Positions 564-56,500 of a DNA stretch of 64,000 nucleotides are shown piece by piece. Every line of letters starts with the position of its first letter. Position 1 is the first letter of the stretch. A program made the translations under genes and the position numbers. The stretch is from Magallana gigas (Eukaryota), in assembly GCF_963853765.1 (NCBI RefSeq), contig NC_088854.1, forward strand, positions 24,800,001 to 24,864,000, read 5' to 3'. The notes beneath the pieces were generated by a model, which was given only the letters and a program-made list of their open reading frames with translations, was not told the DNA's origin and did not search any database.

Positions 564-2439
564 GTAAGTTTTCTCTTTAAAAAAAACTCGACAATAAACA
601 CTTTAGTTTTGTATTATACTTGTGAGTAAAACAATGTCTTTTGTTGCTCGCTCAGTAAAATCATATCAGGACTTTGATTAGATTTTGGGTTATATGACAC
701 ATGCACTTGTTTCTGCATTGAAAGGCATGCGAATAGTATACTAAAGGGTAGACTTTACCGCAGAGACAAACTCCTGTGTTATAAATGTATAATGTTAAAT
801 TATTTAGGTATCATAGTTATGTAATATGAAACGACTTAACATCGGGAGTTACTCTAGAACCAAATAGATTCAGGGATAACTATACTATCATTATAATTTT
901 TACTGACCAAAATTTTATTTACGGGGTTTTGATTTAGAAAACACCATAGAAAACACCATTTAGTTTTATGAACACAAGTGAAAATAATGTATTGATTAAT
1001 CTTTAAGCGAATGCTTGTGTTGCACTGCAACATCATAAAGATATCATAATATAGTTTTCAAAAAATATTTTTGATGATAAATCCATGTAACTGGTTATTG
1101 CCCTTTGAATCTGTAGCTGTAGACCCACCGGACAATATTGGAAAGGAGTATGTACTGATGTTTATGGAAAACTTCAAATTAGAGAAAAATCGAAATTTTC
1201 CCCTGGAAGTTTACATCAGTACACCCGAAAAAACGCCAGCTCGTGTGACCATTAAATCACCCATTTCTGCCAATCCCCGGGTAGACCAAACAGTAACTGT
1301 TAATCCCGGCTCGGTGCAACGAGTGAACATAAGCGAGGCTTTCCGAATGGTAGGAAGCGTCCAATCCTCGAAAGGATTGCTGATACAGTCGGACCAGGAT
1401 ATAGCGGTGTATGGTGCTAACAAAGATACGTTGTCAAATGACGTGTATTGTGCGCTACCTGTAGACACGTTAGGCACCGAGTACTACGCTGCCTGCTATG
1501 GTCCAGCTCAGATTAAAACAGAACTTGGAGTCGCGTCCACTCAGGACAGCACCTCGGTAACAGTGACCCTTCCTAGCAAAGACAAATCCCTGACGGTCGA
1601 TTTTATGGGTAAAACGTATAAAGCTGGGGAAGTAATTCATACGAAATTGGACAAATACCAGACTTTACAACTTCAGAGTAGTCAGGATTTGACTGGGGCT
1701 CACATTGTAAGTGATAAACCAGTGGCTGCATTTAGTGGTAATATCAAAACAAATATCGGCACCGGAATATACGCTGACCATTTAGTAGAACAGTTGACCC
1801 CAGTTGATACGTGGGGTAAAAAATTTGTCACCGTTCCGATTCCAAAACGAACTACCGGGGATTTCTTCCGAATCATCGCCAGCGAGGACAATACTGAAGT
1901 TACAATTTCAGGCATGACCCCAATCAAGATTCCAAAAGCCGGAGAATGGGTACAAGTATCAATACCATCAGGCGAACATAAAATGGTTACATCTACTAAA
2001 CCGGTCATGCTAATGCAATACGTATTGAGTCAACAAAACGCCACGGAGCCTGCCGACCCTTCCATGATTACTATACCACCTTACGAGCTTTTTGGGGCCA
2101 AATATACCTTTTCAACACCTCAATACTCTCGGCCTGACTATGGTGCCGGATATTCCTACGAACACGAATTTATGGTCGTTGTCAAAGACGCAGACCGGAA
2201 TACGTTGCTTTTGGATGACAAACCGTTTCCATCGAACGCACATTGGACTACAATTCCAGGAACTGATCTTGTGGGTGGTTATGTTACCATTTCTGCAGGA
2301 TCCCATACTGTACGGAACACTGATCCCACGGCGCTCATTGGTGGATTTCTATACGGACATGCCTTTCACGAGTCTTATGGATTTCCAACCGGAATGCGAT
2401 TGGCTAAAATAAATGCCGTAAGTAGCTTTTGATTTCGAT

Positions 2440-5500: not shown

Positions 5501-8500
5501 AAAATATATAAGTGATAAATATAGACTCAAATGTTTAACTTATTCAAATTTTCTCTGCTGGCTTATTAGGTTACACAATCCCGTTTGTGAACTTCTCGCG
5601 CTTACAAAATATTTCCATGGTTAAGAATGAAAACTAATTAATAAAAATAATATCTGTATAAAAAAAAAACACCGAGAAAAACAGAGAAAAAAAATAAAAT
5701 TGATTTTTTTTTCCAAGATGATGATCAAGATGGTGAGACGGATGAAGACTGTGCGTTACCCCTTCCAGGTGGGAATGTATAGAATAAGAATAAATGATTC
5801 AGATTAACAGTACATGCGATTTATTTACGGTTAAGTATATTCCCATACAAAAAGAAATATCAGCAGGATGTTTTGCAATTTAGATATTTTAAAATCACAA
5901 CTTATGCAATAATATAAGTATATTGTACTTTAGTTGATGGCGGGTGGTCAAACTGGCAAAGTTGGGGTCAGTGCACAGCCTCCTGTGAAAACGGAACCAT
6001 GGCGCGCCAAAGAACATGCGACAATCCTGCACCAGCGTACGGAGGCCAAAACTGTAGTGGGTCAGGCCAAGAGACGAAGCCCTGTGACACGGGGAAAGCT
6101 TGTCCAGGTTTGATTTTTTTAGCGATAAATTTTTGGTAAATTGATTACGTTGCAGTCGGTACTTATGTTGCATTGTGTAAAAGTTCTCTATCATAAAATC
6201 GCGGACAATTATTTGATAAGGGGTTTCTATACGTCGTCGCAATCAAACGCCATTTGAAGTGAATGTTTTGTATTGTAATGTTGTTTAAGGGTACATCAGT
6301 TTCACGATTACGTGTTTCCCTTTTTACAGTGGACATCGACGCAGTGTGTAAGAAGAATAAGACTGCTATTGTTGTCAACCCTTTCAACTGTGCTCAGTAT
6401 TACGATTGCTCCAAGCAAGTCTCGGCATTTGGAAAGCCGTACCTGCAGGAATGCAAATACCCTGACCTTTTTTCGTCTGGTACCAACTCATGTGAACCGT
6501 TTACATCGGTTACTGGAAGTTGTGGCAGAAGGAAAGAAGCCCAAGCGCCATGTAAAACACTTTATCTATTCTCGTACCTTCCATCTGGAATCATTTGAAA
6601 TGCAATAATTTATATATATAGAAACATATACTGTAAACGTGGTTATATTGACGAGTTCAAAATTTGACGATTTTTTAGTAAGAGACAATTGGCGAGTTTT
6701 AATTTTGACGAATATTTGAATAAGAGTAAGAGTTATTTATCTTTGATTTCTTATAATGCCAGGGTTAGGGTTATCTTTCTTTGATTAAATTGTATGATCC
6801 CTCAGTGTTCCTGGACAATGGAACAACTAGGCGCAAGACAAGTCAACTTCGCCGGCTTGGGGGATAAGCGACAAATCACCGCTTTGTTTTGTGTGACTCT
6901 AGATGGTCACTTATTACCCCCACAACTCATATATTAGGGAACTACATCTATGTGTCATCCAAATATAAACTTACGGATGATTGGGCAATTACCCACTCAC
7001 CTAATCACTGGTCTACCGAGGAAACGATGTTAGAGTACATTGAGGGGATTATCGTCCCGTATGTTGAGGCTGTTCGCGAATACCTACCCGTGGCACAAAT
7101 AAATCAACCGGCATTAGCTATTTTCGATGTGTTTGCAGCGCATATAAGCAAAAAAGTCTTATCAGCATTGAAAAAAGCTAACATTCGATATGTGTTCGTA
7201 CCGGCGGGTTGTACTGACGAATTACAGCCGCTAGATCAAACAGTTAATAAGAAATACAAAGACCTTCTCAAAACCGAATTTCAAAACTGGTACTCTGAGA
7301 AAGTTCGCCAGAAACTAGAAAATCAAAAGCCGGGGGAAAACATCGGCTATGTTGACATAGACATGAGAACGTCGACAATTAAACCGCTTCATGCAAAATG
7401 GATGCATAAAGTTCATGATGTTATCAGCAAGGATTGCGACTTTCTTGCGAACTCTTTTACAAGCGTTGGTATTAATAAAATTAAACTTTGATTGAAAAAA
7501 AAGTCTGTACAGATTTGATGGAATAAAATTGTTCTTTGTATTTTGTTTTTATTCACTATACGATATTGCCTGAGGTAACAAAGTAGGTCAAACACGGCAT
7601 GATAATTACGCACGCAAAGTTATTATAGAATGTTGTGACGATTGAGTGATAATTGCATTTAAAACATGCTTGTTTAGATTTTATGGGTTTTTTCAATGCT
7701 AATTACGTGTTTTGTATCATTAACTTTGATCTAGTCCTAACGGGATAATGCCGATAAAAAATTCTGGTATTAATACGCTCTATATATGATGTGAAGTTTG
7801 GCGAGTGGAAATTTTGACGAGAAAACAAAAATCGCCAACATAGTCAAAATTAACACATCGTCAAAATTTCCACGTTTACAGTATTATATCTATCAGTAAT
7901 TCAATATTGCTACTGGCCATAGTTGTTTACCACTTGATAATTACCAATTAATAATATCATATTGTCTTGACCGTGTCTTTGCAGGTGATTACGTTCAAAA
8001 TAAATGTAATTCTACTGACCCAACTTGTGAACCCTGCCCAAAACGATTACCATCGTGTGTTGGACTACCTGATGGCAAACAGATATTTCCAGGAAAGCAG
8101 CTTGCTCCAGATTATATTGAATGTCAACAAAACAGGACAATGGAGGTCAAGAAATGTCATTTGCAATATTTTAATCCCCAGATGAAAGATTGCAAAAATT
8201 ATTCCCGACGTAAGTATCATTGCATTAAAATGTCAACATTTTGTTTATTAACGTTTTGTCAGCATTTTGATTTTTAAAAGAGTCCCCGGCGTCGTTTAGA
8301 TTGTCGTTGTCAGCAGCGTTAGTTTTTCAATTTTTATATATATTCTTTCCTAGAACCACTCAGCCAGATTCAACCATAGTATTTACATGTAGGAGGTTGT
8401 TAAAAAGAGAAAAAACGATTATTTTTGAAAATCGCACTTATAAAAAAACTACAAATATATTGTAATTTTGAAGAATTTTTTTCTAAAGAACACACGAACC

Positions 8501-11500
8501 AAACTTTTAACGTTTCAAACAAATATTTTTTAAAATAAAGAATAATTTAAAGTCTACTTAAACTGAACCTCATTGACCATTAAAAAAGAGATTGGAGCAA
8601 ATGAAAAAATGCAAATTTCTACACAATAATGTAAAGAGGGAAATTCTACATAGGAAAATGTAGGGGAAATATACAAGCACCCCTCTCATGCAAGCAGCAT
8701 ATTGTTTTAAATCAGATACAAATATTTGATCCCGGTTGTGGTGGCATTAAAAGTTTAGAGATATACACTTACGTTTTTAGGTGATACAAAAAGGAAATTC
8801 TACCTCAGACTAGTAGTGTGACAGACTGGCCTCTGGATTTTTTTGCGTTGATTTTAGTTTGCTTAATCTATGTTTTCTTTGTTTGATAGCTGTTTTAAAC
8901 TTTCTGTGCTCAAAAAACCAGTCGGCTGCCATTCCGGATCCTGCAAATTGTGCCAAATATTATGACTGCTCTAAACTGTTCACGTCGACGACTCTTCAAG
9001 ATATGACAACGGAATGCAAATACCCGGATCTATTCTCTGTAAAAGATGGCAAGTGCCAGGACTTCAAAAGTGTTAATTGCACCACAAGAAAAGAACCAAT
9101 GGCACCATGTATGTTATTCTTTTCTGTATTCTCATTGAAAATCACGAAACAAATGGTTGAATCCTCCAATTCGTTATGAACTTATATCATTTTGTTTAAT
9201 TAATTAAGCGATACTGTAACATATGGTTATTTATTCATACAAACGAATATATTTGCTTGCCATTTCAAGACCAACATACGAAAAAGTTACGAAAACGTTT
9301 AAATAATGAACAACCTGAGCCTATTTATTTTTCTCTCGATTTTTCAGTTGTTATAGCCAGTTTTTATTTTCGTTCAACTTTAAAAGAAAAAAAAATGAAT
9401 TCCCTAAAGTTCAAACACCAAGTCGCAAGAGGAAAACATTTTAGTAAAAACCTTATCATTATGTCACATGCAATACTAGTACTAGTATGTACCATAATGC
9501 AATAAAGAATAAATCCGCTCTCCCCTGTCACAACATTTGCTGAAATTAAAAGAATGTGTTTTTTCGAGTCCTTTGTGCGATTTAAAAAGTTTCCAAAAGT
9601 AAATGATAACGATATTATTTGTATGTTTGCAACGTGAAAGTAAACGAAAATTGTATCATTGCAAAAATAATTGGATGGCTATGGTATGAATAATAATATA
9701 CACATTCTTCGAATTTTAAACAAAAAAACCCCAACCTTTTCTTTTATGTGCTTCTATCAGCAGTTGTCACCACACGTATTTTCTGTTACATGTATGATAG
9801 CAATATATACAATTTGCCCTTATAGATATAACACAATTAAGTTTAAAACATAATTTAAAAATAATTCATTTCAGGCGAATATGAGCAGAATCTGTGTCCA
9901 GCCAACAACCCGTCCTGCGCTCCCTGTCCTAAACGTCTGCCGTCTTGCATTACTTTGCCTGATAATCAGGAGGCGTTTCCAGGAAAATTATGGCAAGCAG
10001 ATTACATTGTGTGCGACACCAATAGAACCATGAATATAACTACGTGTCCTCAAGGAGAATATTTCAATCCCAGACTAAAGAAATGCATGAAATCTGTTCC
10101 CCCAGGTAAACCAGCTATCTGTTGATTTACGTGTCACTCTTTCTACTAAAGATTCGGCGGATTGAAATAAATTCATTTGAAAATGAGACTCAAATATGGA
10201 AACCGCAATAATCAAAGAATTTCCAATTTTACTTTTCAGTGGACGTTCCGGACTACTGCTCAGCTCATCCCAAAGCGCTGCTACCAAAAGAGGACAACTG
10301 CGGCCAATACATCAATTGTTCAGATCCAGGATTTGATGGGAATCACACCATGGAGTGTCAGTATCCTGATCTTTTCTCTGTGACCACCATGTCGTGCCAA
10401 TGGTTCGAGAATGTGACCTGTGATAGTCGTATGGAGCCACAAGCACCTTGTGAGTAGTTTGTTCGATCATTTTGCTTTGGAAGAAGTATCATTATAATTA
10501 AATGAGTCTATAAAAGTCCCATTTTCCTCGTTTGTCCCTGATAGGCGAGTACCATCAAAACCAATGTGCACCGACAAACAAGAGTTGCATCCCTTGCAAA
10601 AAGAGACTCCCAAGTTGTGTGACATTATCTGATGGAAAGAATGCCATTGATTGGTTGCTCTGGAAACCTGATTATGCCGAATGTTACAAGAACAGGACCA
10701 TGAAAATGGAGAAATGTCCCACTCGCTTCTTTGATCCAGTTCAGAGAAAATGTACCGACAAGGCCAACCCAGGTGAGTGTCGCATTTTGATCTGTGTGTG
10801 ACACACAGCTGTGTTGATTACACCACATGTTTGAAAAGTTGAAATCACTTTCTGTGTTTGTTTATTAATATCATTTTATTTATCTTTAGGCGATATTGAC
10901 GAAATCTGCAAACAGAACCCCAAAGCCATTTTGCGGAAGAAAGATAACTGTGCTCAGTATTACAACTGTTCCGTATCTAACTCCTCCTATGGAGGTCACT
11001 TGCAGGAATGTAAATATCCGGATCTGTTCTCCACCGTCAGTATGGAATGTGAAAATTTCAAGACTGTAACTTGTGACAACAGAACAGAACCCCAGGCTCC
11101 ATGTGAGTTTTGAAGGATATGAGGACAAGTATTTGAATGATTTTCTAACTAATTATGACGTTCCGTCAAAATGTGGTAATGTGTTTTGTATTTACAAATG
11201 ATTATGTATAATTCAGGTGAATATGTTCAGAATATGTGTCCAGCCAACAACCCGTCCTGCGCTCCCTGTCCTAAACGTCTGCCGTCTTGCATTACTTTGC
11301 CTGATAATCAGGAGGCGTTTCCAGGAAAATTATGGCAAGCAGATTACATTGTGTGCGACACCAATAGAACCATGAATATAACTACGTGTCCTCAAGGAGA
11401 ATATTTCAATCCCAGACTAAAGAAATGCATGAAATCTGTTCCCCCAGGTAAACCAGCTATCTGTTGATTTACGTGTCACTCTTTCTACTAAAGATTCGGC

Positions 11501-14500
11501 GGATTGAAATAAATTCATTTGAAAATGAGACTCAAATATGGAAACCGCAATAATCAAAGAATTTCCAATTTTACTTTTCAGTGGACGTTCCGGACTACTG
11601 CTCAGCTCATCCCAAAGCGCTGCTACCAAAAGAGGACAACTGCGGCCAATACATCAATTGTTCAGATCCAGGATTTGATGGGAATCACACCATGGAGTGT
11701 CAGTATCCTGATCTTTTCTCTGTGACCACCATGTCGTGCCAATGGTTCGAGAATGTGACCTGTGATAGTCGTATGGAGCCACAAGCACCTTGTGAGTAGT
11801 TTGTTCGATCATTTTGCTTTGGAAGAAGTATCATTATAATTAAATGAGTCTATAAAAGTCCTATTTTCCTCATTTGTCCCTGATAGGCGAGTACCATCAA
11901 AACCAATGTGCACCGACAAACAAGAGTTGCATCCCTTGCAAAAAGAGACTCCCAAGTTGTGTGACATTATCTGATGGAAAGAATGCCATTGATTGGTTGC
12001 TCTGGAAACCTGATTATGCCGAATGTTACAAGAATAGGACCATGAAAATGGAGAAATGTCCCACTCGCTTCTTTGATCCAGTTCAGAGAAAATGTACCGA
12101 CAAGGCCAACCCAGGTGAGTGTCGCATTTTGATCTGTGTGTGACACACAGCTGTGTTGATTACACCACATGTTTAAAAAGTTGAAATCACTTTCTGTGTT
12201 TGTTTATTAATATCATTTTATTTATCTTTAGGCGATATTGACGAAATCTGCAAACAGAACCCCAAAGCCATTTTGCGGAAGAAAGATAACTGTGCTCAGT
12301 ATTACAACTGTTCCGTATCTAACTCCTCCTATGGAGGTCACTTGCAGGAATGTAAATATCCGGATCTGTTCTCCACTGTCAGTATGGAATGTGAAAATTT
12401 CAAGACTGTAACTTGTGACAACAGAACAGAACCCCAGGCTCCATGTGAGTTTTGAAGGATATGAGGACAAGTATTTGAATGATTTTCTAACTAATTATTA
12501 CGTTCCGTCAAAATGTGGTAATGTGTTTTGTATTTACAAATGAGTATGTATAATTCAGGTGAATATGTTCAGAATCTGTGTCCAGCCAACAACCCGTCCT
12601 GCACTCCCTGTCCTAAACGTCTGCCTTCTTGCATTACTTTGCCTGATAATCAGGAGGCGTTTCCAGGAAAATTATGGCAAGCAGATTACATTGTGTGCGA
12701 CACCAATAGAACCATGAACATAACTACGTGTCCTCAAGGAGAATATTTCAATCCCAGACTAAAGAAATGCATGAAATCTGTTCCCCCAGGTAAACCAGCT
12801 ATCTGTTGATTTACGTGTCACTCTTTCTACTAAAGATTCGGCGGATTGAAATAAATTCATTTGAAAATGAGACTCAAATATGGAAACCGCAATAATCAAA
12901 GAATTTCCAATTTTACTTTTCAGTGGACGTTCCGGACTACTGCTCAGCTCATCCCAAAGCGCTGCTACCAAAAGAGGACAACTGCGGCCAATACATCAAT
13001 TGTTCAGATCCAGGATTTGATGGGAATCACACCATGGAGTGTCAGTATCCTGATCTTTTCTCTGTGACCACCATGTCGTGCCAATGGTTCGAGAATGTGA
13101 CCTGTGATAGTCGTATGGAGCCACAAGCACCTTGTGAGTAGTTTGTTCGATCATTTTGCTTTGGAAGAAGTATCATTATAATTAAATGAGTCTATAAAAG
13201 TCCTATTTTCCTCATTTGTCCCTGATAGGCGAGTACCATCAAAACCAATGTGCACCGACAAACAAGAGTTGCATCCCTTGCAAAAAGAGACTCCCAAGTT
13301 GTGTGACATTATCTGATGGAAAGAATGCCATTGATTGGTTGCTCTGGAAACCTGATTATGCCGAATGTTACAAGAATAGGACCATGAAAATGGAGAAATG
13401 TCCCACTCGCTTCTTTGATCCAGTTCAGAGAAAATGTACCGACAAGGCCAACCCAGGTGAGTGTCGCATTTTGATCTGTGTGTGACACACAGCTGTGTTG
13501 ATTACACCACATGTTTAAAAAGTTGAAATCACTTTCTGTGTTTGTTTATTAATATCATTTTATTTATCTTTAGGCGATATTGACGAAATCTGCAAACAGA
13601 ACCCCAAAGCCATTATGCGGAAGAAAGATAACTGTGCTCAGTATTACAACTGTTCCGTATCTAACTCCTCCTATGGAGGTCACTTGCAGGAATGTAAATA
13701 TCCGGATCTGTTCTCCACTGTCAGTATGGAATGTGAAAATTTCAAGACTGTAACTTGTGACAACAGAACAGAACCCCAGGCTCCATGTGAGTTTTGAAGG
13801 ATATGAGGACAAGTATTTGAATGATTTTCTAACTAATTATGACGTTCCGTCAAAATGTGGTAATGTGTTTTGTATTTACAAATGAGTATGTATAATTCAG
13901 GTGAATATGTTCAGAATCTGTGTCCAGCCAACAACCCGTCCTGCACTCCCTGTCCTAAGCGTCTGCCTTCTTGCATTACTTTGCCTGATAATCAGGAGGC
14001 GTTTCCAGGAAAATTATGGCAAGCAGATTACATTGTGTGCGACACCAATAGAACCATGAACATAACTACGTGTCCTCAAGGAGAATATTTCAATCCCAGA
14101 CTAAAGAAATGCATGAAATCTGTTCCCCCAGGTAAACCAGCTATCTGTTGATTTACGTGTCACTCTTTCTACTAAAGATTCGGCGGATTGAAATAAATTC
14201 ATTTGAAAATGAGACTCAAATATGGAAACCGCAATAATCAAAGAATTTCCAATTTTACTTTTCAGTGGACGTTCCGGACTACTGCTCAGCTCATCCCAAA
14301 GCGCTGCTACCAAAAGAGGACAACTGCGGCCAATACATCAATTGTTCAGATCCAGGATTTGATGGGAATCACACCATGGAGTGTCAGTATCCTGATCTTT
14401 TCTCTGTGACCACCATGTCGTGCCAATGGTTCGAGAATGTGACCTGTGATAGTCGTATGGAGCCACAAGCACCTTGTGAGTAGTTTGTTCGATCATTTTG

Positions 14501-17500
14501 CTTTGGAAGAAGTATCATTATAATTAAATGAGTCTATAAAAGTCCAATTTTTCCTCGTTTGTCCCTGAAAGGCGAGTACCATCAAAACCAATGTGCACCG
14601 ACAAACAAGAGTTGCATCCCTTGCAAAAAGAGACTCCCAAGTTGTGTGACATTATCTGATGGAAAGAATGCCATTGATTGGTTGCTCTGGAAACCTGATT
14701 ATGCCGAATGTTACAAGAACAGGACCATGAAAATGGAGAAATGTCCCACTCGCTTCTTTGATCCAGTTCAGAGAAAATGTACCGACAAGGCCAACCCAGG
14801 TGAGTGTCGCATTTTGATCTGTGTGTGACACAGCTGTGTTGATTACACCACATGTTTAAAAAGTTGAAATCACTTTCTGTGTTTGTTTATTAATATCATT
14901 TCATTCATCTTTAGGCGATATTGACGAAATCTGCAAACAGAACCCCAAAGCCATTTTGCGGAAGATAGATAACTGTGCTCAGTATTACAACTGTTCCGTA
15001 TCTAACTCCTCCTATGGAGGTCACTTGCAGGAATGTAAATATCCGGATCTGTTCTCCACTGTCAGTATGGAATGTGAAAATTTCAAGACTGTAACTTGTG
15101 ACAACAGAACAGAACCCCAGGCTCCATGTGAGTTTTGAAGGATATGAGGACAAGTATTTGAATGATTTTTTAACTAATTATGACGTTCCGTCAAAATGTG
15201 GTAATGTGTTTTGTATTTACAAATGATTATGTATAATTCAGGTGAATATGTTCAGAATCTGTGTCCAGCCAACAACCCGTCCTGCGCTCCCTGTCCTAAA
15301 CGTCTGCCGTCTTGCATTACTTTGCCTGATAATCAGGAGGCGTTTCCAGGAAAATTATGGCAAGCAGATTACATTGTGTGCGACACCAACAGAACCATGA
15401 ACATAACTACGTGTCCTCAAGGAGAATATTTCAATCCCAGACTAAAGAAATGCATGAAATCTGTTCCCCCAGGTAAACCAGCTAGCTGTTGATTTACGTG
15501 TCACTCTTTCTACTAAAGATTCGGCGGATTGAAATAAATTCACTTGAAAATGAGACTCAAATATGGAAACCGCAATAATCAAAGAATTTCCGATTTTACT
15601 TTTCAGTGGACGTTCCGGACTACTGCTCAGCTCATCCTAAAGCGCTGCTACCAAAAGAGGACAACTGCGGCCAATACATCAATTGTTCAGATCCAGGATT
15701 TGATGGGAATCACACCATGGAGTGTCAGTATCCTGATCTTTTCTCTGTGACCACCATGTCGTGCCAATGGTTCGAGAATGTGACCTGTGATAGTCGTATG
15801 GAGCCACAAGCACCTTGTGAGTAGTTTGTTCGATCATTTTGCTTTGGAAGAAGTATCATTATAATTAAATGAGTCTATAAAAGTCCAATTTTTCCTCGTT
15901 TGTCCCTGAAAGGCGAGTACCATCAAAACCAATGTGCACCGACAAACAAGAGTTGCATCCCTTGCAAAAAGAGACTCCCAAGTTGTGTGACATTATCTGA
16001 TGGAAAGAATGCCATTGATTGGTTGCTCTGGAAACCTGATTATGCCGAATGTTACAAGAACAGGACCATGAAAATGGAGAAATGTCCCACTCGCTTCTTT
16101 GATCCAGTTCAGAGAAAATGTACCGACAAGGCCAACCCAGGTGAGTGTCGCATTTTGATCTGTGTGTGACACAGCTGTGTTGATTACACCACATGTTTAA
16201 AAAGTTGAAATCACTTTCTGTGTTTGTTTATTAATATCATTTTATTCATCTTTAGGCGATATTGACGAAATCTGCAAACAGAACCCCAAAGCCATTTTGC
16301 GGAAGATAGATAACTGTGCTCAGTATTACAACTGTTCCGTATCTAACTCCTCCTATGGAGGTCACTTGCAGGAATGTAAATATCCGGATCTGTTCTCCAC
16401 TGTCAGTATGGAATGTGAAAATTTCAAGACTGTAACTTGTGACAACAGAACAGAACCCCAGGCTCCATGTGAGTTTTGAAGGATATGAGGACAAGTATTT
16501 GAATGATTTTTTAACTAATTATGACGTTCCGTCAAAATGTGGTAATGTGTTTTGTATTTACAAATGATTATGTATAATTCAGGTGAATATGTTCAGAATC
16601 TGTGTCCAGCCAACAACCCGTCCTGCGCTCCCTGTCCTAAACGTCTGCCGTCTTGCATTACTTTGCCTGATAATCAGGAGGCGTTTCCAGGAAAATTATG
16701 GCAAGCAGATTACATTGTGTGCGACACCAATAGAACCATGAACATAACTACGTGTCCTCAAGGAGAATATTTCAATCCCAGACTAAAGAAATGCATGAAA
16801 TCTGTTCCCCCAGGTAAACCAGCTAGCTGTTGATTTACGTGTCACTCTTTCTACTAAAGATTCGGCGGATTGAAATAAATTCACTTGAAAATGAGACTCA
16901 AATATGGAAACCGCGATAATCAAAGAATTTCCAATTTTACTTTTCAGTGGACGTTCCGGACTACTGCTCAGCTCATCCTAAAGCGCTGCTACCAAAAGAG
17001 GACAACTGCGGCCAATACATCAATTGTTCAGATCCAGGATTTGATGGGAATCACACCATGGAGTGTCAGTATCCTGATCTTTTCTCTGTGACCACCATGT
17101 CGTGCCAATGGTTCGAGAATGTGACCTGTGATAGTCGTATGGAGCCACAAGCACCTTGTGAGTAGTTTGTTCGATCATTTTGCTTTGGAAGAAGTATCAT
17201 TATAATTAAATGAGTCTATAAAAGTCCAATTTTTCCTCGTTTGTCCTTGATAGGCGAGTACCATCAAAACCAATGTGCACCGACAAACAAGAGTTGCATC
17301 CCTTGCAAAAAGAGACTCCCAAGTTGTGTGACATTATCTGATGGAAAGAATGCCATTGATTGGTTGCTCTGGAAACCTGATTATGCCGAATGTTACAAGA
17401 ACAGGACCATGAAAATGGAGAAATGTCCCACTCGCTTCTTTGATCCAGTTCAGAGAAAATGTACCGACAAGGCCAACCCAGGTGAGTGTCGCATTTTGAT

Positions 17501-47500: not shown

Positions 47501-50500
47501 TCGAACAGAGCCTATGGCACCTTGTAAGAGCTGTTTATTGTACAAGAGTAATAGTTATAATACATCTGTTCAGTGTGAAACTTTATCCTTATAAGATGTC
47601 ATATACTGTATAAAATAAAATATCTATAGGTGAAACATAAAGAAATGATCCTCACATGCTAAGATCATAAGCTTGACAGTTTTGGGTTAAAACAAAATTT
47701 GAATAATTCCATTTTCTCTGCCAAAGGTCAATATCTCAAAAACCAGTGTTCCATTGGAGACAGCAGTTGCCTCCCTTGTCCATCGAGACTTCCAAGCTGC
47801 CTTACATTACCAGATGGGGCTAATGCCTACCCTGGCAGAAAACAATCTCCCAACTATATTGTTTGTGACAGAAATAGGACGCTAGCAGTAAAAACATGTC
47901 CAACTGGATACTTTGACAAAGCCTCTAGAACGTGTCTGCAGCCAGGGACAACACCATGTGAGTATTGAATAATCCTTGCAAAACAAGTGAGGCTAACCAG
48001 TAAATCTCAATCAAATTTGAAATATCTGTAGAAAAAAGGTGTATGACTAGGTTATGGAGGTATAATTAAAGTTAGCAAGAACTCTCAGATATTCTATGGT
48101 GGTTTTTGTATTACCAAAACAATTGAAGTTTTTTTTTAACTTTGAATTACTGTCTCCTTTTAGTCACACAAGGTGGTATTTGTGGAAATATCAGACATGG
48201 ATTAATCCCAGATCCGTCCAATTGTGCACGGTTTTATAACTGTTCCACGGGCTTGATGAACCCTCTATCCCAGGAATGTCAGTATCCTTCCCTGTTTTCA
48301 ATTATTAGGAGAGCTTGCGTCAACTTTGAGTCTGTCCAGTGTGGTGTAAGATATGAACCACAAAGTCCGTGTAAGTTCTATAAACGTTTTTTAAATTGAA
48401 ATAAAATTTTAACGCTATCGAAATTACACCACGTTTTATGAAACTTCATATTTATAATATTTTTATATTTGATGAATACAAGAAAATGCGTTTAATGAAT
48501 TTTGCAGGTGAGTATAAACAAAATCAATGCACAGACAATGATGGCACCTGTTTACCATGTCTGTCCAGGCTCCCAAGCTGTGTTGGCCTTCCAAACGGAG
48601 AACAGGAGTTCCCAGGTCGACTCTGGACACCCTGGTTTATAGAATGTTTTCTGAACCGAACTGTAAACATTGGCAACTGCGGAAGGGGAGTGTTCGATCC
48701 TAATATTAAGGACTGTGTGGCAGAGCTAGACAAAAGTAAATGAAGAGTTCAAATATTATTGGAAATTGTTATACTTCATTTAATATACACCATGAATAAA
48801 TGCAATAATAAATACTCAAAGGTTATAAGAATAAAATTTAAGTGTATATGTATTATTGCATGGTTTAACTTCTAAAGTCAGTCGATTACTCAAGATTATT
48901 GAGAAATGTTTATCACAAATCACCCAGATGTCTGTGTATTGGCCATTAATTTCGATATATGAAAGATAATCACTAAATGATTTTAAAACAATATTTGCGT
49001 TTTCAAGTATATTGAGATAGAAAATGGAATAAATCTTAAATGGTTATTTTACATGCATTGAATGTTTTGATGTTTCAGATAACATTGACCGCTACTGTAA
49101 ATTCCACCCTTCCGCACTAGCTCCATATTCTGATAACTGTGCACAGTATTTTGATTGTCGCATGAAAGATTCAACACTAAGGGGATTCCTTCATGAATGT
49201 ACATATCCGCAGCTCTTTGACAAAAATTCCATGCAGTGTGCCAGTTATCAATCTGTTTCTTGTGATGGTCGATACAAACCTCTCACCCCATGTAAGTAAA
49301 AGTGATGTAGGCTTCATTTCATTAACTTTAAGATTACTCTTCTCTTAATGTCGAGATCTAGTAAATGAAAGGTGCCTACAGGTTTATGAAATTCAAGATA
49401 AAAATTCTTTTAATGATGGTTCATAATATCTTTGTTTCATAGGGTGTACCGGGGCGTACATTTTTGATAAACACGTTTAAAAAATTGTTTTAAACAACCA
49501 TTTTCTATGAAATATGAAGGACAAAAGTAACAAATCTCAGAGATTTGTCCATTTTTGACTAATGAAATATATCTAGATTGCCTACAGTCTCTCCAAAAAC
49601 GGCATTAAACAAGCTCTTGACCTTCTCCTTAAAATGATGTCAAATTGAACATAGGTTCTGGGATTACTTTTCCCGTGATTAAAAAAAGAATGTCCAAAAT
49701 ATTGTTTTATTTTTCTACTCAATTCCTTTAAAACCGTAAAATACGGGAAAAGATTCATCAAATCAATTATGACGTAACAATGGTTCTAGCACCCCCCCCC
49801 CCCCCTGGAATCATTTACTAGATCCTGACATTAATATTAAAGGTTTGCAAAGCATTAGCTTTTTTATTTTTATTTCAAAAAGGTGACTATGCTCTAAATG
49901 AATGCAGGACTGCTGATTGTATTCCATGTAAAGAGCGCTTCTCTCTATGTAAAAATAAAATAGACGGTCCGAATGCTCTGCCAGGAGAGGTTGTTACAAC
50001 TAGATATGTTGAGTGTAGGCAAGGAGTCGCCACGGGAATCAAGTCATGTCCAGACAGGAAAATATTTAGTCCCCAGGACAGGAAGTGTAAAATCAGTGAC
50101 CAAGGTAGACTTGTTTTTAATCATTGCCTTATAAAACTTATCTTTACAATAAACACATTTTTATCAAATTGAATTTAGAAATGTGTCTCTGGTTTTGTGG
50201 TATTTTATGTCCTACACGTATGACACCCTTTTACATTTTATTGTTTGCAGATACTTTGTATGCAATCTGTAAAGCACATCCTAATATTGTCCGACCAAAT
50301 CCTTACGACTGTGCTCAGTTTATTGACTGCAGTAAGTCAAGACCTGGTCACGTGATTGGGGAGTACGTGAAGGAGTGTCCCTATCCTAAACTGTTTTCTA
50401 CAGACACAATGGAGTGTCAGGAATACAATAAGGTTTTGTGCAATACAAGAAGGGAACCAAGAGCCCCATGTATGTGTCTTTGATATTTCATTTGTTTTAT

Positions 50501-53500
50501 AAATATATTCATGCATATTCCTTGTGTATACCATACGGACTAACATTTAAGAACAAAAGGAAGAATTTAATCTCATCTTTACTTTGCATTGATATTGTAC
50601 ATATCTTTACTTATACTAGGTGAATATCTGCAAAATCTGTGTACTGGAAAGAACAAGAACTGTCAGCCATGCACTGAGAGACTTCCTAGCTGTATAGGAC
50701 TACCAAATGGCTTCAATCCAATTATGGAGTCTCTGTGGAAAAAAGACTATATTGAATGTAAAGACAATAGAACAGTCGCTGTAAAATCCTGTACGAACGG
50801 GGTATTTGATCCTTACAACAGGGAGTGTATGAAAGGTAAGCTATTGTATATCACTTAAACATTGCGTCCATGTTATGTATTAAAAGTCTAGTAACATCGT
50901 AATGTAACTATTATTTGTGTTTGTAGATACTGTATCCAGTTATTGTATGATACACCCAAGGGGGTCCCTACCTAACCCCCAAAACTGTGCCCAGTTTTAT
51001 GACTGCAGTGTAAGGGATTCAGAGTATGGATTATATCTGAAAGAATGCCAATATCCCCTGCTGTATGAAATAGAGACGGGCACCTGTCAACACTACAGTA
51101 AAGTGAACTGTGGGTCACGATATGAACCTGTAGAACCATGTAAGTAATTCTTAACATAACTGCAGAACCTTTTTGTAGTTTTCAAAAGCATGAACACATG
51201 AACAACATACATTTCTTAACACAATAGTCTTAACTATTTGACGGAAAATCAATAACAAAGCTGTTATAGTTTAATGACAATTGAGATTAATTTAAAAACA
51301 ATATAGCAAAAGCAATAAAATGTTCTATTCACTTTTACGCCTAAATGCCTGGTTTGACGAATGCATCAAATTTACATTCAATTTTGTTTCAATCAAAAGT
51401 AGATCAAACTGAGTATATGAAATAACTAGAATATGTATAACCCTACACTACAATCATCAACATCAAAGTGAAAAATCTTTATACGTTTGTCCCTTTTTCT
51501 GCGAAAAGAAATGAAAATAAAGATGAACAGATATATAGATAAGTACCAATTAAAAGTAACAGCCAGTTTTGTTGTGACATTACAGGTGAGTATATTCAGA
51601 GTCAGTGTATCGGTGCTGGTTGTCCGGCCTGCAGCCAGGTCAGTTGCCGCACTCACCCTGATGGAGCCAATGAATACCCTGGCAGGAAGCACACCCCGTG
51701 GTACGTGGTGTGTGAGAATGGAAGAACTGTGGCCGTGGAACAGTGTCACGTGGGAATTTTTGACCAGCAGTCTCGCATGTGTTTGACTAATACAGGTAAA
51801 TTTGCTGGTGAGATATACGAAGAACAGAAGACAATTTCAGAGTTGTTTTTTTGGATAATGTGAAAATAAATGAGAAATATATATTTAGTAGATTGTGTAA
51901 AAGGCAATAAAGAGGCTTTGTATTAATGAAAGCATGTGTTGCATCAATATTCTGTATGTGTAAAATAAGATAATTCATAATGCTTGTTAAACATTTATTG
52001 GATTTTTATTATCTGTAGTTGTGTAATAGATAATATGTTAACACTAACCAAATACTCATTTAGCCACAACATTAACAATCAATATCAACGCAATTCTTAT
52101 ACATAATTAACAAAACAGGTTTAGCTTATTATAACGAAGTGATTTTAATCTTTTGTATTAAAAAAAAGAACTTTAAACTCTGGTTGTAACACGTTTTTGA
52201 TTGGCTAAATAAATCCAACTATATATTTGGCGCGTTTGCTTTACGTATGAATTCTTTTGATGCTGCATTTAGGAGGTATGGAACACCATCATATTATGAC
52301 ATACTTATACATTGTAATTTCTTCCAAAATAGAAACAATTGAGAAAAATAGTTGACACATTTTTCTATCATTTGTGTCTCTCACTGCGTAGTGCAATAGA
52401 TTAAAGGAATCTCTATCATTTTGTAAGTCATCAGTTAGAATTCATCTGAGGCTGAGGCATTTTTTACTTTTGTAAAATATTTTCAAAAACATTTTATGGT
52501 CATTTACTGTACAATTTTAGAACGCCGGAAATTTTTTATAATTATAAACTTTCATCGATATTAACATCTACATCCCTTTTCTCTTTAAATTTCCTATAAA
52601 TTAACGCCATTTTACATAATGCGTCTTATTTTCTTAAGTTAATATATTAACTTGAATTAATTTGTACTTATATTCTATAATAAAAGCACAACTGGGACAG
52701 TTTCCGCTGACTCAAAAATATGTTATACAGATAAAATAAAAAATATTGAATAAAAGTTGTAAAAATTCGATGATTAAATTCATTCATTTTATTAAATTTT
52801 TAAACATTAATTTTTAGCAAATCAAAAGCTCCTTTTTAAAAAGAATAAGTAGATTCGTCTGAAATATTTAACTTCATATAATATGTTTTACAATGCAATT
52901 ACAACGTAGAAAACCATTTGTTTAGCCAATCAAATGAAATTTAAAACTAAAAAACTTCTTACTAGTACCTATCAGCTGCCATTGTATACAATTGCAGGCT
53001 CTATAAATGACTACTGTGAGCGGAATCCCGGACTGGTTTTCCCAAGCTTTGCAAGCTGTGCACAGTTTTACGAGTGTGGCCGATACAATGACATAACGGG
53101 GACCTATCTGCACGAATGTGCTTATCCATTGCTGTATGACACCGCCTCAAAAACGTGTCAACACTTCACCAAAGTAAAATGTGACAAAAGGAATGTCCCT
53201 TATGCACCATGTCAGTATACACAAAGTGCCTGATAAGAAATTTAAAATTTTCCATCAATGTTGACACTTAAAGATATTTAATTACACATTTTTCTTTTAA
53301 TTAGGTGACTATATGCAAAATAGATGTCATGAAAGAAATACAACGTGCAAACCTTGTGATGAAAGGTTCATTTCCTGTGTAAACAAACCCGATGGTAGAA
53401 ATGAAGTGCCAGGAGACATATACTCGTATGTTTATTGTCTCCAGAATAGGACAATCAACAGAGTCATGTGTTCACAGGGTGCATTCTTTCATCCGTTAGT

Positions 53501-56500
53501 CAAAGAATGCATACCACTCAGATTTTTTGGTAGGTTTCAAGGATTATATAAAAAGTAAAATTGGTTTGAATGAACCATCAATGATTTCTTTTAACCTTTA
53601 TCAAATACAAATGACAGCTATTCCTTTATGAATAACAAGCTGAACAATACTCCTTTTATGTCATTTTTCTAAAGAACCATATTTGATGTTTTTTGTAATT
53701 CAAATAAATTACTACAATGTCTACGATGATATGAATCGAACAGTATGGTAAAAAGGATTTTCGTTGTATTTCTTATAAACGTTTACCCAAATGAAGTTAT
53801 GAAAGTTTTGATATCCAAACATATAAAACACAACGAATACAACATATATAAAGATATATTAAGAAGTAAGGGTAAAAATAAAATCAAATGTGATCGAAAA
53901 TGAATTAAATTTCACTTCAATTAATTTTTTTCAACCTAATTGAAATATGAAAATTTATTGTTCAGCGTCAATCGTTGCACTCTTTAATGGTTATCTCTGT
54001 CGTGCATTGTACAATTTCTCGGAAACTCCTTGACCAGTTTCGTGGAAATATGTAATGTCAAGATATCGATGAAACTTTTTGTATTCGCTTTATTACTGAT
54101 GAAATACAGATTAGTCACGACATAGTCAATATTTTTCATTCAGTACGTATTTATACTTCAATACATGTATATGGTTTGATATTCAATGGGAAAAAACGTG
54201 GCGGAAGGTTAACCAAACATGAAAAAAGCTTTCAAATCATTATTTCCGCATAATTTGCAATGTGAAAAAAGGAATGCGGTCTAAAAGTGAACCAAAGTTT
54301 GAGTTTTTTTTTTTGGGGGGGGGGGGGGTTACGGGGGTTGCAGTATTTTCTTCTTTTTTGTGTTGAAGGTTTCCAGAGGAAATCAATATAAATCATGCAT
54401 CTTTTTTTATAATAATGTCAATACAATATACATTGTCTTTGATTATTTTATTCATGTACACTTTTAGCTTGCTTTATGTTTTTTTAACATATATTAATCG
54501 AAAGAAGAGAGTTTGATAGGATTCCACCGTGAAATCATGCAAATATATATATTGATATACAGAAAAGGTCCTGATACTAGTATTCTTGCCATTCATAAAT
54601 GTGCTATTTCCAAAAATCAATGCAATTTTCACATATATTTTTTTATCATTTTCTGTATTCAAACTGGTCATTGGGAGTAATTTAAAACGGATTTAGGTAA
54701 TTATTCCGCTTACTGAAAAATACTAGCGAGAAATTTCAATTTCGCTAAAACTTGCACTTTAACTGCAAAAATGTCATCATAATTCAGCGGGGTGGACACT
54801 GACCCCTTTTTAAAGTACTCTTTGTGTACAGATTTCAGTTATATGTTTCCCAAAAAAATCAGTAGAAGTTAGATACCTTAAAGCAGGAGTTTTCATTTTC
54901 TTGGGGGTTATTTTTTTGTAAAATATATTTTTAGACTTGCAGATTGAATGAAAAATGGAGAAAAAAAATTGGTTATAAATTCTCTGCTTAAATTTATCTT
55001 TGATTGCAAACTTTAGAGTTAATTAAGCTACAAAAACCAAATATTGCCCTTTTCTAATGTTGTTTTGGTACTACAAATAAAAAACACTTGCATTTTCTGG
55101 AAAGGTTGATTTTAAAAGACTTTTATGATAGGATGAAAACCGGGTAAATTAAGTCATAAAAAAGGAAATGGGTAGCGGCTCATGTTTACAAACACAATTA
55201 GTGATCCTTTTGAAAGTGGAGACATTATTTTGGTGGGTTTTTGTTGGTGTATTTCGGGCTAAAAAGATATAGATAGCATATAAGTTGTAGGCTATGTCAA
55301 TACTGATGTCTCGAATCCAGTGAGAATCCAAAGATGTTTCCATTAGACTCGTGAAGACAGAAAACTTTGGAATTTGTACTCGGTCGTTCTGTTGACAAAT
55401 TGATATAAACTGCTTGAAATAACTTCTTAACTTCCCATATCATTAATAGTCCATTACTGGGTCCGATAGTGTGGGAAATGCATGCAATAGAATGACGTTA
55501 ATGAGATTAAGTGAATTCATGTTTTAGTTTTTGTAGAATGTCAGAATTTGCAGAAATAGATATTCGACCAAATACTATCTAAAGTGTATTTATTCGACGA
55601 ATACATTTTATTGAAGTGGATTGTTTATTCAGATGCAAAGTCGAGAAATGTATATAGTGGTTCCATTCCATTGCCTAGTGAAAAAGGGATTAATGTAGGA
55701 GCAAGATAAATGTTTGGAATGCTATGATTGGGTGGAAATTTTGTAGATGTGAATTTGACACCCATGTTGCCATGGGCTGGACGCAGTTGTCTTATCGACT
55801 GTAAAATTCTCATCTTTGAGTCACTTCACAGTTTGACTTAAGCCATTGCATAATGAAAGATTGATGTGTCCCTGCATCCTTTACTGACAGGATATCCACA
55901 AGTTTTTGTAGTGCAAATTATTTTAATTGCTATAGAAGACAACATCTACTTTATCCGTGGAAATGATATGTTTAACTTTGACTTTTGTCAGATAAGACAG
56001 GATAACAGACAGATTAAACAAGCCCCAGTCTGAGGCAAACATAACCACCCAAATCTTTATCAACCTCATCAAGAGTAAACACTTGATCGAGGAGATCTAA
56101 AAATGGTGCTAATCAAAAAGATATTTGTCCTTGACACTTTCCATGAAGAGGGAGTCATCTTTACATCGAAGTATGACAAAGCTACATTTGATATTTTTTC
56201 ACCGGATGCAACGGGATTAGGTTTAGATACCCGTATATATAGCTGAATCTTCGTCGAGTGTCTTTACATAAACTTAACGTACTTTAGAAGTAGAAAATCT
56301 GATTATAATTCAAAATGGAATTTTTTCTGTATACTTTCGGCTTGATTCTTTTGTGTAAGTTTGATTTTTTGAAATCTTTTTTAAGTATCTGAAGTACCGG
56401 ATTTTTATTTTTCAAGCGTGTTTTTTCTTCATCGATGGAGAAATAATTTTTATTAATTATATTTTTAAGAAGATATTGATACATGTAAATCAAACTCTAT

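Follow-up and report, generated by a model that had tools for sequence, protein, structure and literature searches.

The CBM14 or peritrophin-A domain (PF01607) is the main chitin-binding domain of animals and is, as a rule, regarded as an independent bead. In insects and nematodes, secreted matrix proteins can carry dozens of such domains (the peritrophins, or the Toxocara chondroitin proteoglycan 2, P0010) and are thought to cross-link chitin. Crystallographically, the peritrophin-A domain has the disulfide pattern C1-C3, C2-C6 and C4-C5 (PMC10619976). Among molluscs, it is found in the Lottia gigantea protein Lotgi1|231869, a major acid-soluble component of the shell matrix that was published as having '10 peritrophin-A domains', with their paired architecture unremarked (PMC3374290), and in the Pif/BMSP shell proteins, which combine VWA, CBM_14, CBM_14-like and laminin G domains (PMC3374290, PMC11291548). 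Not all proteins of this fold are chitin binders, however: Aplysia EHEP, which binds phlorotannin instead, and Der p 23 have both been reported not to bind chitin (PMC10619976).

Here we describe a locus of Magallana gigas in which two kinds of CBM14 domain form a strictly alternating array. The window, i.e. the whole stretch of DNA that was analysed, comprises 64,000 nucleotides (assembly GCF_963853765.1, contig NC_088854.1, positions 24,800,001 to 24,864,000 of the forward strand), and all coordinates below count from its first letter. Six-frame reading, pattern searches and an explicit exon model place 98 exons at 6330-53529 on the plus strand, in the unbroken order P, Q, P, Q; the 49 P and 49 Q exons thus make up 49 modules of 140-160 residues (median 146). 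Coordinates and count are identical to those of the preliminary description, which had proposed strict alternation of a repeat of about 147 residues. Four divergent exons (Q 42088, P 44161, Q 51586 and Q 53305) escaped the first patterns and were recovered by eye. All 98 exon lengths are divisible by three, and every intron of the array is a phase-1 GT..AG intron, with GT at all donors and AG at 97 acceptors (module 34 has no P/Q intron). Once spliced, the exons yield 21,747 nt or 7,249 codons free of stops, encoding at least 7,249 residues with 682 cysteines and 151 N-glycosylation sequons. Since each Q exon matches the Q profile at about 1e-17 to 1e-33 in the whole 564 Mb genome, a chance origin of the array is excluded.

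Each module consists of P, a linker and Q. P is a canonical six-Cys CBM14 domain with the usual cysteine spacing, plus a seventh cysteine; Q is a divergent CBM14 domain, in which the canonical C2 and C6 positions lack a cysteine in all 49 copies; and the 23-residue linker between them contains four cysteines (L1-L4), the seventh of P among them. The consensus reads ..EPQAPC-EYxQNxC-x6-CxPC-PxRLPS-C over the linker and ..lpDG..W..Y..C..NRT..C..YFxP..C over Q, in agreement with the earlier outline of a P with C1-C6, a linker PC-EYxQNxC-x6-CxPC-PxRLPS and a Q reduced to the equivalents of C1, C3, C4 and C5. The 'PC' with which that linker opened holds as a motif and needs one refinement: its cysteine, L1, is the seventh of P, and the P/Q intron splits its codon where the P exon ends, with T contributed by the P exon and GY by the Q exon (T|GY). 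L1 is therefore present only if a Q exon follows a P exon. Together with the 1-1 phase of both exon types, this gene structure may help to hold the pair together.

The linker is the most conserved stretch of the module, and its motif C-EY.QN.C-x5-6-C.PC-x6-C, between the six-Cys and the four-Cys domain, is intact in 47 of the 49 modules. Inter-module identity is only about 44%, yet all 14 cysteines are likewise kept in 47 modules, and the two exceptions, modules 38 and 41, lack one cysteine pair each. Such losses are seen only pairwise, namely P2 with P6 (module 41 and its Tegillarca orthologue) and L2 with L3 (module 38), and we propose P1-P3, P2-P6, P4-P5, L1-L4, L2-L3, Q1-Q3 and Q4-Q5 as the putative disulfide map. 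Aromatic positions are conserved in both domains: in P, YY ahead of C3 and YP.LF behind C4; in Q, W..Y and YF.P at the corresponding places.

Along the array, modules 1-2 (6330..10105; P 6330-6551, Q 7985-8209, P 8890-9108, Q 9875-10105) are followed by a recent tandem amplification, modules 3-14 (10240..18156), recognized from the exon model and DNA identity. It consists of six copies of a 1,341-1,342 bp unit with two modules (four exons) each, which are 98.4-99.8% identical including introns (93% for the last copy), and its GC content is raised, at 0.40. Modules 15-33 (18292..37217) are unique and diverged by module comparison; neighbours at offsets 1-8 are about 47% identical, with a faint four-module super-repeat. 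In module 34 (37384..37824), which has lost the intron and carries P and Q in a single exon, the frame ...TPC-EYQQN... is displayed directly across the P/Q junction. Modules 35-37 (38143..41484) precede module 38 (41573..42321), which has lost both L2 and L3 and retains 12 cysteines, and modules 39-40 (42439..44070) precede module 41 (44161..44774), whose P lacks C2 and C6, a double loss shared with the orthologous module of Tegillarca granosa (P0004:102-246). Modules 42-49 (44973..53529) are the most diverged, and the linker is shortened in modules 46 and 48. Across modules, the P-P and Q-Q similarity matrices correlate (Mantel r 0.32, reached in 0 of 2000 permutations).

The array is the central part of one transcribed gene. 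Four public runs, one from each of four studies, contain spliced contigs (3.7-7.5 kb) in which the 11 junctions predicted for 33000-38900 are all found and no exon is skipped; contig pieces also cover 37384-37822 of the single-exon module 34.

Both halves of the module belong to the CBM14 family. P exons score 27-38 bits against Pfam CBM_14 (cut-off 22.1), whereas Q exons score 19-27 bits, with 30 of 38 distinct Q exons at E <= 0.01, and Q therefore straddles the curated cut-off. The CBM_14 match in Q exons always begins at residue 24 and leaves the linker uncovered; accordingly, a Pfam scan of the module gives two CBM_14 matches and none over the linker. By its cysteine positions, P has the six-Cys pattern (C1-C3, C2-C6, C4-C5) and Q does not. 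In the predicted model, P aligns structurally with the peritrophin-A domain of EHEP, with Avr4 and with tachycitin, at Z 4.2-5.5. The counterparts of Q are Der p 23, at Z 6.2 with an rmsd of 1.9 over 47 residues, and the CBM14 domain of chitotriosidase (CHIT1), at Z 5.1. Both are thus predicted to adopt the small, beta-rich CBM14 fold, and the pair is still a variant of this well-known family.

P, linker and Q had been suggested to form an obligate structural unit, possibly an unnamed composite, and structure prediction supports this notion. For a single module (the sequence of module 34), AlphaFold2 returned a model with pLDDT 97.1 and pTM 0.86, in which the linker is as confident as the domains. 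For a two-module tandem, pLDDT was 93.8, falling to 84 at the Q-to-P joint, and pTM was 0.62, a drop that may partly reflect the thinner paired alignment (11 two-module rows). Neither prediction resembles independent, flexibly linked domains; the rigidity of the module is a prediction drawn solely from these confidence values. Whole-module superposition is also obtained with independent AlphaFold DB cluster models of mollusc relatives (best TM 0.94, rmsd 1.3 over 145 residues; five further models at TM 0.75-0.87) and with one Mollusca cluster of the ESM Atlas (TM 0.88), as opposed to ordinary tandem CBM14 proteins (TM 0.3-0.45, rmsd 10-17). Five further AlphaFold DB entries, which we take to be rotifer proteins from their accession series, also align with the entire module (TM 0.66-0.72). 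No chain in the PDB fits P and Q together, and the composite arrangement is one for which Pfam likewise has no entry beyond its two CBM_14 matches.

A search of 1.84 billion proteins with a profile of linker plus Q found multi-module relatives, and those with a named source are all molluscs, from 11 genera (Sinanodonta, Tegillarca, Solemya, Pecten, Magallana, Lottia, Nucella, Bulinus, Babylonia, Biomphalaria and Aplysia). In mollusc proteins, P directly precedes 61 full-length linker+Q matches. A Q without a preceding P occurs 13 times in five low-quality or fragmentary gene models (P0002-P0004 from Tegillarca granosa, the separate model P0011, and the oyster fragment P0012), as well as in short single-exon ORFs, which have no room for a P exon; a lone P occurs in one scallop 'isoform X2'. 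The pairing is hence not absolute at the level of transcript models, but relatives do not commonly have P or Q alone. Generic CBM14 proteins match the profile only from about position 20 onward, and the multi-CBM14 proteins of insects and nematodes from position 19-23, so that both lack the linker. Bivalves and gastropods alike retain the pair, down to proteins with two modules (Solemya, P0095) or one (Biomphalaria, Aplysia, Babylonia), and paralogous loci of the same genome contain six alternating and three single P-Q modules (9 in total), whose order is never broken. In Sinanodonta, a three-module unit is repeated seven times, and a scallop relative begins with a hydrophobic N-terminus, signal-peptide-like by eye, followed by a plain CBM14 domain. 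In molluscs, the pair is a conserved building block, apparently one without a name so far.

Could the alternation merely record how the gene was duplicated? If the copied unit happened to have two exons, P and Q might be independent beads and the linker a mere Cys-rich spacer, as in the flexibly spaced tandem CBM14 arrays that are common in insects and nematodes; recent copies have indeed arisen as multi-exon blocks, both here (the 1,342 bp four-exon unit, six times) and in Sinanodonta (the three-module unit, seven times). We nevertheless consider this quite unlikely. Because all exons are of phase 1-1, gaining or losing one exon would not disrupt the frame, and yet the order is unbroken in the 49 modules here and the 9 of the paralogous loci. 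The pair is also retained in single-module genes, and in bivalves as well as gastropods. Moreover, the linker is the most conserved part and is modelled by AlphaFold2 as confidently as the domains, and the whole module can be superposed on independent models with a TM of 0.75-0.94, whereas ordinary tandems reach about 0.3. The reading that the array is an assembly artefact or a dead repeat is already contradicted: it could appeal to the near-identity of modules 3-14, where an assembler could miscount copies, but the 7,249 stop-free codons, the intact splice sites of all 97 introns, the spliced contigs from four independent studies and the 14 cysteines kept in 47 of 49 modules at about 44% identity leave uncertain only how often the 1,342 bp unit is repeated.

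The flanks of the array contain further domains on the same strand. Upstream lies an IgGFc_binding domain of the FCGBP N-terminal type (E 3.4e-69) in a 460-aa open frame at 1050..2429 (called as a 453-aa ORF at 1071-2432), followed by a thrombospondin type 1 exon at 5934..6107 (TSP_1, 48 bits), which has phase-1 splice sites on both sides and, judged by this compatibility, is possibly the exon preceding module 1 of the same gene. Downstream, three exon-like frames at 56975..62692 (about 56975-57184, 60803-60982 and 62495-62692) give an F5/8 type C (discoidin) match covering positions 40-87 and 86-125 of the F5_F8_type_C profile; the first has no Pfam match on its own, and its phase-1 acceptor is compatible with the end of module 49. 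Finally, 62944..63818 holds a Ser/Thr/Asn-rich, mucin-like open frame (62944-63270) and a canonical six-Cys CBM14 exon (63630-63818; CBM_14, 47 bits). No VWA or laminin G domain was found by Pfam in the longer open frames flanking the array.

How might such a protein work? In our proposal, the linker would staple P to Q and fix the two CBM14 domains in a set geometry, so that each module would be one rigid body with, presumably, a carbohydrate-binding face on either domain. Between modules, the short stretch that leads from Q into the following P would act as a looser hinge, and the whole would thus be a chain of 49 stiff, two-headed units with 98 CBM14 domains, which would most likely cross-link chitin fibres of an extracellular matrix, or serve as their scaffold, with very high avidity. 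We infer the chitin ligand, the secretion and the tissue, and regard a secreted, disulfide-rich array of rigid double-CBM14 modules that acts as a multivalent chitin cross-linker or scaffold as the probable identity of the protein.

Two alternatives bear on ligand and site. EHEP and Der p 23, the two reported non-binders of chitin, rank among the closest solved matches to the module domains, the phlorotannin-binding EHEP (8IN3) being the best by sequence and Foldseek and Der p 23 the best structural match of Q (PMC10619976), which raises the prospect of a CBM14 fold whose ligand is not chitin, for example dietary polyphenols as in EHEP, other glycans or microbes. This seems unlikely to us, given that EHEP fits at the single-domain level only (pair TM 0.32, rmsd 17), that the conserved aromatic positions are retained in P and Q, and that the Lottia relative is located in a chitin-based shell matrix (PMC3374290). 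Alternatively, the protein may bind chitin not during shell formation but in mucus or gut, like peritrophins or gel-forming mucins; the gastric shield, the style sac and gill mucus would be examples of such sites. The mix of IgGFc_binding, TSP1, discoidin, mucin-like and further CBM14 sequences on the same strand is typical of mucosal matrix proteins, its splice phases are compatible with the array, and the many-domain CBM14 proteins of insects are gut peritrophins. On the other hand, these flanking domains are, by splice phase, only candidate parts of the same transcript, and protein-level data exist for only one relative, which is a component of the shell matrix (PMC3374290); we hold this reading to be a real possibility, albeit one with less than even prospects. 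Building on the chitin cross-linker that we favour, one may speculate further, and at present rather doubtfully, that P-linker-Q constitutes a composite fold of its own, which is ancient in molluscs and, given the five putative rotifer entries, may extend to other spiralians, and whose stapled linker sets two chitin-binding faces at a distance and angle matching the chitin lattice. The 49-module protein would then be a ruler or template that orders chitin fibrils in biomineral or another matrix, and not a sticky string, with the split cysteine codon as a safeguard that ties disulfide parity to the choice of exons.

In this gene and throughout the molluscs, a pair of CBM14 domains and the Cys-rich staple between them act as a single conserved unit. 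For annotation, this matters because Pfam places half of the domains at its cut-off or beneath it and offers no model for the linker, so that published counts such as the '10 peritrophin-A domains' of the Lottia shell protein miss the true architecture. For materials and biomineralization research, the 146-residue module is a small, confidently predicted and expressible candidate for a two-headed binder, and its natural 98-domain polymer a candidate organizer of chitin frameworks. As to gene evolution, we find symmetric phase-1 exons that are free to shuffle, yet do not, and a structural cysteine encoded across the joining intron.

Compared with CBM14 (PF01607) as it is known, both halves of the module fit profile and fold, P with the six-Cys pattern at its usual spacing. 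However, Q lacks the canonical C2 and C6, the conserved four-Cys linker of 23 residues lies outside the profile, and the prediction joins the two domains into one rigid body instead of separate beads. The multi-CBM14 proteins of insects and nematodes resemble the array in their number of domains, but these are uniform six-Cys domains with variable spacers and without the linker, and their pairs fail to superpose on the module (TM 0.3-0.45). EHEP of Aplysia kurodai (8IN3) is also a mollusc protein with several peritrophin-A domains in a fixed arrangement, though here three six-Cys domains with long loops form a triangle unlike the module in geometry (TM 0.32, rmsd 17). The best structural matches of Q, Der p 23 (4ZCE) and the human chitotriosidase CBM14 (6SO0, 5HBF), are single C-terminal or stand-alone domains and not half of a stapled pair. 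The preliminary description had equated the cysteine set of Q with that of chitotriosidase, which is correct for the absence of C2 and C6 in both; the chitotriosidase CBM14, however, remains a six-Cys domain by virtue of two extra cysteines near C5, whereas Q has four without replacement. In Pif/BMSP, as in the module, a canonical CBM14 domain is directly followed by a degenerate CBM14-like stretch (PMC3374290, PMC11291548), but this second domain has an inserted cysteine doublet in place of lost cysteines, it is accompanied by VWA and laminin G, neither of which is found here, and the module shows only a poor fit (TM 0.34) to mollusc VWA+CBM_14 proteins from an Atlas cluster. A further close system is Lotgi1|231869 (XP_009053297, P0007), which matches the linker+Q profile at E 3.8e-67. 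Several of its modules have Gly for the Asn of the NRT sequon, and it has 6 modules, in two blocks with a Pro-rich spacer between them, as against 49 here; but they are the same P-linker-Q modules, at about 30-39% identity to those of the window.

The six-frame reading reveals cysteine-rich open frames of two kinds, which alternate on the forward strand from about 6.3 to 53.5 kb: P, a canonical six-Cys CBM14 (peritrophin-A) domain, and Q, a reduced four-Cys CBM14, separated by a 23-residue linker with four cysteines of its own (L1–L4). Pattern matching recovered 48 copies of P and 46 of Q; the other four, which are diverged (Q at 42088, P at 44161, Q at 51586 and Q at 53305), were seen in the frame listing. 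All P frames end in ...APC; since the Cys codon TGT precedes RAGT, the donor lies after the T (T|GTRAGT). Every Q exon starts with GT or GC after AG, followed by EY.QN.C, and all end one base into a codon, in most copies 19 nt past the last Cys; P exons start, in most copies, 17 nt ahead of the first. The resulting model comprises 98 exons from 6330 to 53529, whose lengths are all divisible by three, with introns exclusively in phase 1 and sites exclusively GT..AG; when joined, they yield 21,747 nt or 7,249 codons without a single stop. This bears out the preliminary description, which had proposed 49 strictly alternating P/Q modules in this interval and a repeat of about 147 residues; the modules measure 140–160 aa (n = 49). 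Only module 34 (37384–37824, forward strand) is devoid of the P/Q intron: here, the genome itself reads through ...TPC-EYQQN... across the former intron position.

The array is part of a genuine gene that is expressed. In four public runs from as many studies, presumed to be RNA, contigs skip exactly the 11 introns predicted in 33000–38900. Their joints are GT..AG, and each contig piece corresponds to a single exon of the model, as does the undivided module 34, which is transcribed as one exon; single contigs of 3.7–7.5 kb hold many consecutive P and Q exons. As these are joined forms free of introns, they do not stem from genomic DNA of the array locus. Together, the stop-free exon model and the spliced contigs led us to reject a reading as a pseudogene or artefact.

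On the module level, the 39 non-duplicated copies share a median pairwise identity of 44%, with the consensus dv..yC...p.a..p...NCaqyynCS......g....EC.YPdLFs.....C..F..V.C..R.EPqAPC-eY.QN.C.....sC.PCp.RLPSC.glpDG....p..lW...yi.C..NRT.....C..g.yF.P....C...v... In total, the array encodes 682 Cys and 151 N-x-S/T sequons; the consensus retains two conserved ones, NCS in the P half and NRT in the Q half. Both domain types belong to CBM14: both halves match the Pfam model CBM_14, P with 27–38 bits and Q with 19–27 bits (cut-off 22.1), and 30 of the 38 distinct Q exons do so at E <= 0.01. The match in Q always begins at residue 24 of the exon, and no Pfam model covers any part of the 23-residue linker. 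When one full module was aligned jointly with separate P and Q exons in MAFFT, P was placed over Q; hence, the two are homologous. For the same reason, this alignment was unusable as a module profile, and a linker+Q profile and a separate module alignment were employed instead. In alignment with the peritrophin-A domains known from the Aplysia EHEP crystal structure, the Q profile places its Trp-containing stretch at the C2 position and ends ahead of C6, so that Q indeed retains only the equivalents of C1, C3, C4 and C5.

All 14 Cys columns are complete in 47 of the 49 modules, and the two exceptions are informative for the disulfide pattern. In peritrophin-A crystal structures, the cysteines pair as C1–C3, C2–C6 and C4–C5 (PMC10619976). 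Module 41 lacks C2 and C6 of P jointly, which is consistent with C2–C6 pairing. The same double loss recurs in the orthologous module of a Tegillarca granosa protein (P0004, residues 102–246), so the ancestry of individual modules reaches back far enough to be followed across species. In module 38, L2 and L3 are missing together, which suggests an L2–L3 bond and, by elimination, an L1–L4 bond; the Cys of the split codon at the P exon end would thus bond to a Cys encoded by the Q exon. Two gastropod proteins, whose first modules possess only L1 and one other linker Cys, are compatible with this predicted linker map.

To gauge how widespread this arrangement is, we searched 1.84 billion representative proteins with the linker+Q profile and obtained 632 matches at E <= 1e-3. 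Multi-module matches with an organism name are confined to molluscs, while the two-module protein P0095 carries no name. Relatives were found in the bivalves Sinanodonta woodiana, Tegillarca granosa, Solemya velum, Pecten maximus and Magallana gigas, as well as in the gastropods Lottia gigantea, Nucella lapillus, Bulinus truncatus, Babylonia areolata, Biomphalaria and Aplysia californica; the remaining top matches are mostly short ORFs from raw assemblies, each representing a lone Q exon. The Solemya protein and P0095 contain two intact P-linker-Q modules each, and those of Biomphalaria, Aplysia and Babylonia contain one, followed by ordinary CBM14 domains. A homologue search with the module of the Biomphalaria 'chitin binding beak protein 1', a name derived from squid beak, returned three proteins only. 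Within the 564 Mb M. gigas genome, the profile matches 84 exons, 49 of them in the array. About 16 lie in a paralogous multi-module gene on the reverse strand of contig C8 (4.83–4.97 Mb; 4826000–4971000), where a 10 kb sample (L007) holds six strictly alternating modules; several more represent single-module paralogues on both strands of contig C4 (at about 3.39, 13.84–13.88, 22.86–22.90 and 24.0–24.1 Mb), and the three loci sampled there have one P-Q pair each.

To see whether P or Q commonly occurs alone in such relatives, we searched the retrieved proteins with one profile for P and another for Q, regarding a Q match as linker-containing if it started at profile position <= 3. In 61 such matches, P lies immediately ahead and ends in the L1 Cys. 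Linker+Q without a directly preceding P was encountered in long proteins 13 times, in three Tegillarca models (one flagged as low quality by its source), the relative P0011 and the oyster fragment P0012, where exon skipping appears to be the cause. Conversely, the scallop protein P0172 (Pecten maximus XP_033759713.1, RefSeq isoform X2) has 11 P-Q modules and one P that adjoins the next P (residues 581–724). Its L1 position is Ser, as expected from the split codon if no Q exon follows, and alternative skipping of a Q exon may account for it. Solitary P or Q in this context is therefore not common, being restricted in long proteins to 13 cases in five models and one scallop P, and the earlier proposal that P-linker-Q constitutes a unit is supported. 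Generic CBM14 proteins, such as Toxocara chondroitin proteoglycan 2, mostly match Q from about position 12–23 and hence do not contain the full linker. Likewise, P0013 (333 aa, from raw assemblies) consists of tandem four-Cys Q-like CBM14 domains with neither P nor linker, so the reduced domain can stand alone when the linker is absent.

Structure prediction points in the same direction. Module 34, folded with an alignment of about 24–25 full modules of relatives and the separate exons of the window, reached a mean pLDDT of 97.1 (97–98 in the linker) and a pTM of 0.86. A two-module Sinanodonta stretch reached 93.8 and 0.62, with a dip to pLDDT 84 over ten residues at the Q-to-P join, the pattern that two stiff bodies with a looser hinge between them should give; a thinner paired alignment may contribute to the lower pTM. 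The predictions thus depict a rigid module and not independent, flexibly linked domains. The best AlphaFold DB model matches the whole module with TM 0.94 (rmsd 1.3, 145 residues), five further models with 0.75–0.87, and another five entries with 0.66–0.72; the top six are presumably mollusc entries, judging from their accession series. Ordinary tandem CBM14 proteins align to both halves in sequence, yet superimpose with TM 0.3–0.45 and rmsd 10–17. In the ESM Atlas, one Mollusca cluster scored TM 0.88 and nothing else exceeded 0.45, and a sequence-feature search of the Atlas yielded only generic CBM14 clusters with scores < 0.9. PDB searches with Foldseek and with an exhaustive aligner retrieved single-domain matches only and none with the arrangement of the module; the best two-domain alignment, to Aplysia EHEP, had TM 0.32 and rmsd 17. 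P-linker-Q thus forms a conserved, apparently rigid unit across molluscs.

Within the array, modules that resemble each other in P also tend to do so in Q (correlation of the P-P and Q-Q similarity matrices, Mantel r 0.32, 0 of 2000 permutations as high), which is compatible with the copying of whole modules. A young amplification at 10240–18288 comprises six head-to-tail copies of a 1,341–1,342 bp unit, i.e. two modules with four exons, introns included; as the longest TRF period is 500, unit lengths were measured by script. The copies share 98.4–99.8% DNA identity (93% for the last), and homology extends back into module 2, from its Q exon (9875) onward. Individuals may differ in the number of copies, or the assembly may have it wrong. 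A parallel is found in the 3,101 aa Sinanodonta protein, in which a three-module unit is repeated seven times. In modules 15–33 (18292–37217), lengths recur as long-long-short-middle and a four-module period is faint (mean identity 0.51 at offset 4, 0.50 at offset 8 and ~0.47 elsewhere), and a strong higher-order repeat was rejected.

The flanks hold further same-strand frames. Upstream, a single 460-aa open frame (1050–2429) matches the full IgGFc_binding domain (FCGBP N-terminal, E 3e-69) and is a candidate 5' part of the gene; it is followed by a (GA)n microsatellite (~2378–2547). A short frame with a DGIDNDCDGKIDEE-type motif (4150–4308), slightly below the cut-off for Pfam Cu-binding_MopE (25 bits), may be an exon. 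Two related tandem arrays in opposite orientation, 4376–4617 (43 bp x 5.6) and 5238–5406 (92 bp x 1.8), sit between the upstream exons and probably represent a repeat or transposon ends. Downstream (56975–63818), three frames share a discoidin (F5/8 type C) domain, the first of them (56977–57183) having no Pfam match of its own, and are followed by a Ser/Thr/Asn-rich mucin-like frame and a canonical six-Cys CBM14; all of these are possibly 3' exons of the gene. The phase-1 sites of the discoidin exons, and of a TSP1 exon upstream of the array (5934–6107), are compatible with the array. A 166 bp satellite (59146–60227; 6.5 copies, 86% match) in the gap between discoidin pieces yields repeated minus-strand open frames.

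Taken together, the array would encode a string of 98 CBM14 domains in 49 stiff, two-headed units, probably N-glycosylated, with many predicted disulfides and with aromatic positions conserved in both halves, which may face the ligand by likeness to other CBM14 domains. The N-terminus of the scallop relative is hydrophobic and resembles a signal peptide by eye. The simplest reading would be a secreted chitin cross-linker or scaffold of very high avidity. The ligand may, however, be something other than chitin, because EHEP and Der p 23 share the CBM14 fold and do not bind chitin (PMC10619976). As to where the putative scaffold acts, the frames that flank the array on its strand are as suggestive of a matrix protein of mucosa or gut as of a shell protein.

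Database entries label the family members 'chitin-binding type-2 domain-containing' or hypothetical. In the searchable literature, we found no description of a six-Cys and a four-Cys CBM14 with a four-Cys staple as a conserved, apparently rigid mollusc unit, of its coding by two symmetric exons with a split Cys codon, or of the 49-fold repetition, and no matches to the UniProt or locus accessions of the relatives. Among known domains, Q structurally resembles Der p 23 most closely (Z 6.2, rmsd 1.9 over 47 residues), followed here by the CBM14 of chitotriosidase (Z 5.1). The likeness of Q to the latter, previously described as the same reduced Cys set, holds in part: aligned to the canonical CBM14 of the window (63630–63818), the human domain carries Arg in the C2 position and ends short of C6, so both are devoid of these two cysteines, but it is still a six-Cys domain owing to two additional Cys beside C5. 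Among known proteins, the only relative with protein-level data is P0007 from Lottia (Lotgi1|231869), a major acid-soluble shell-matrix protein described as having '10 chitin-binding peritrophin A domains in two blocks' (PMC3374290).
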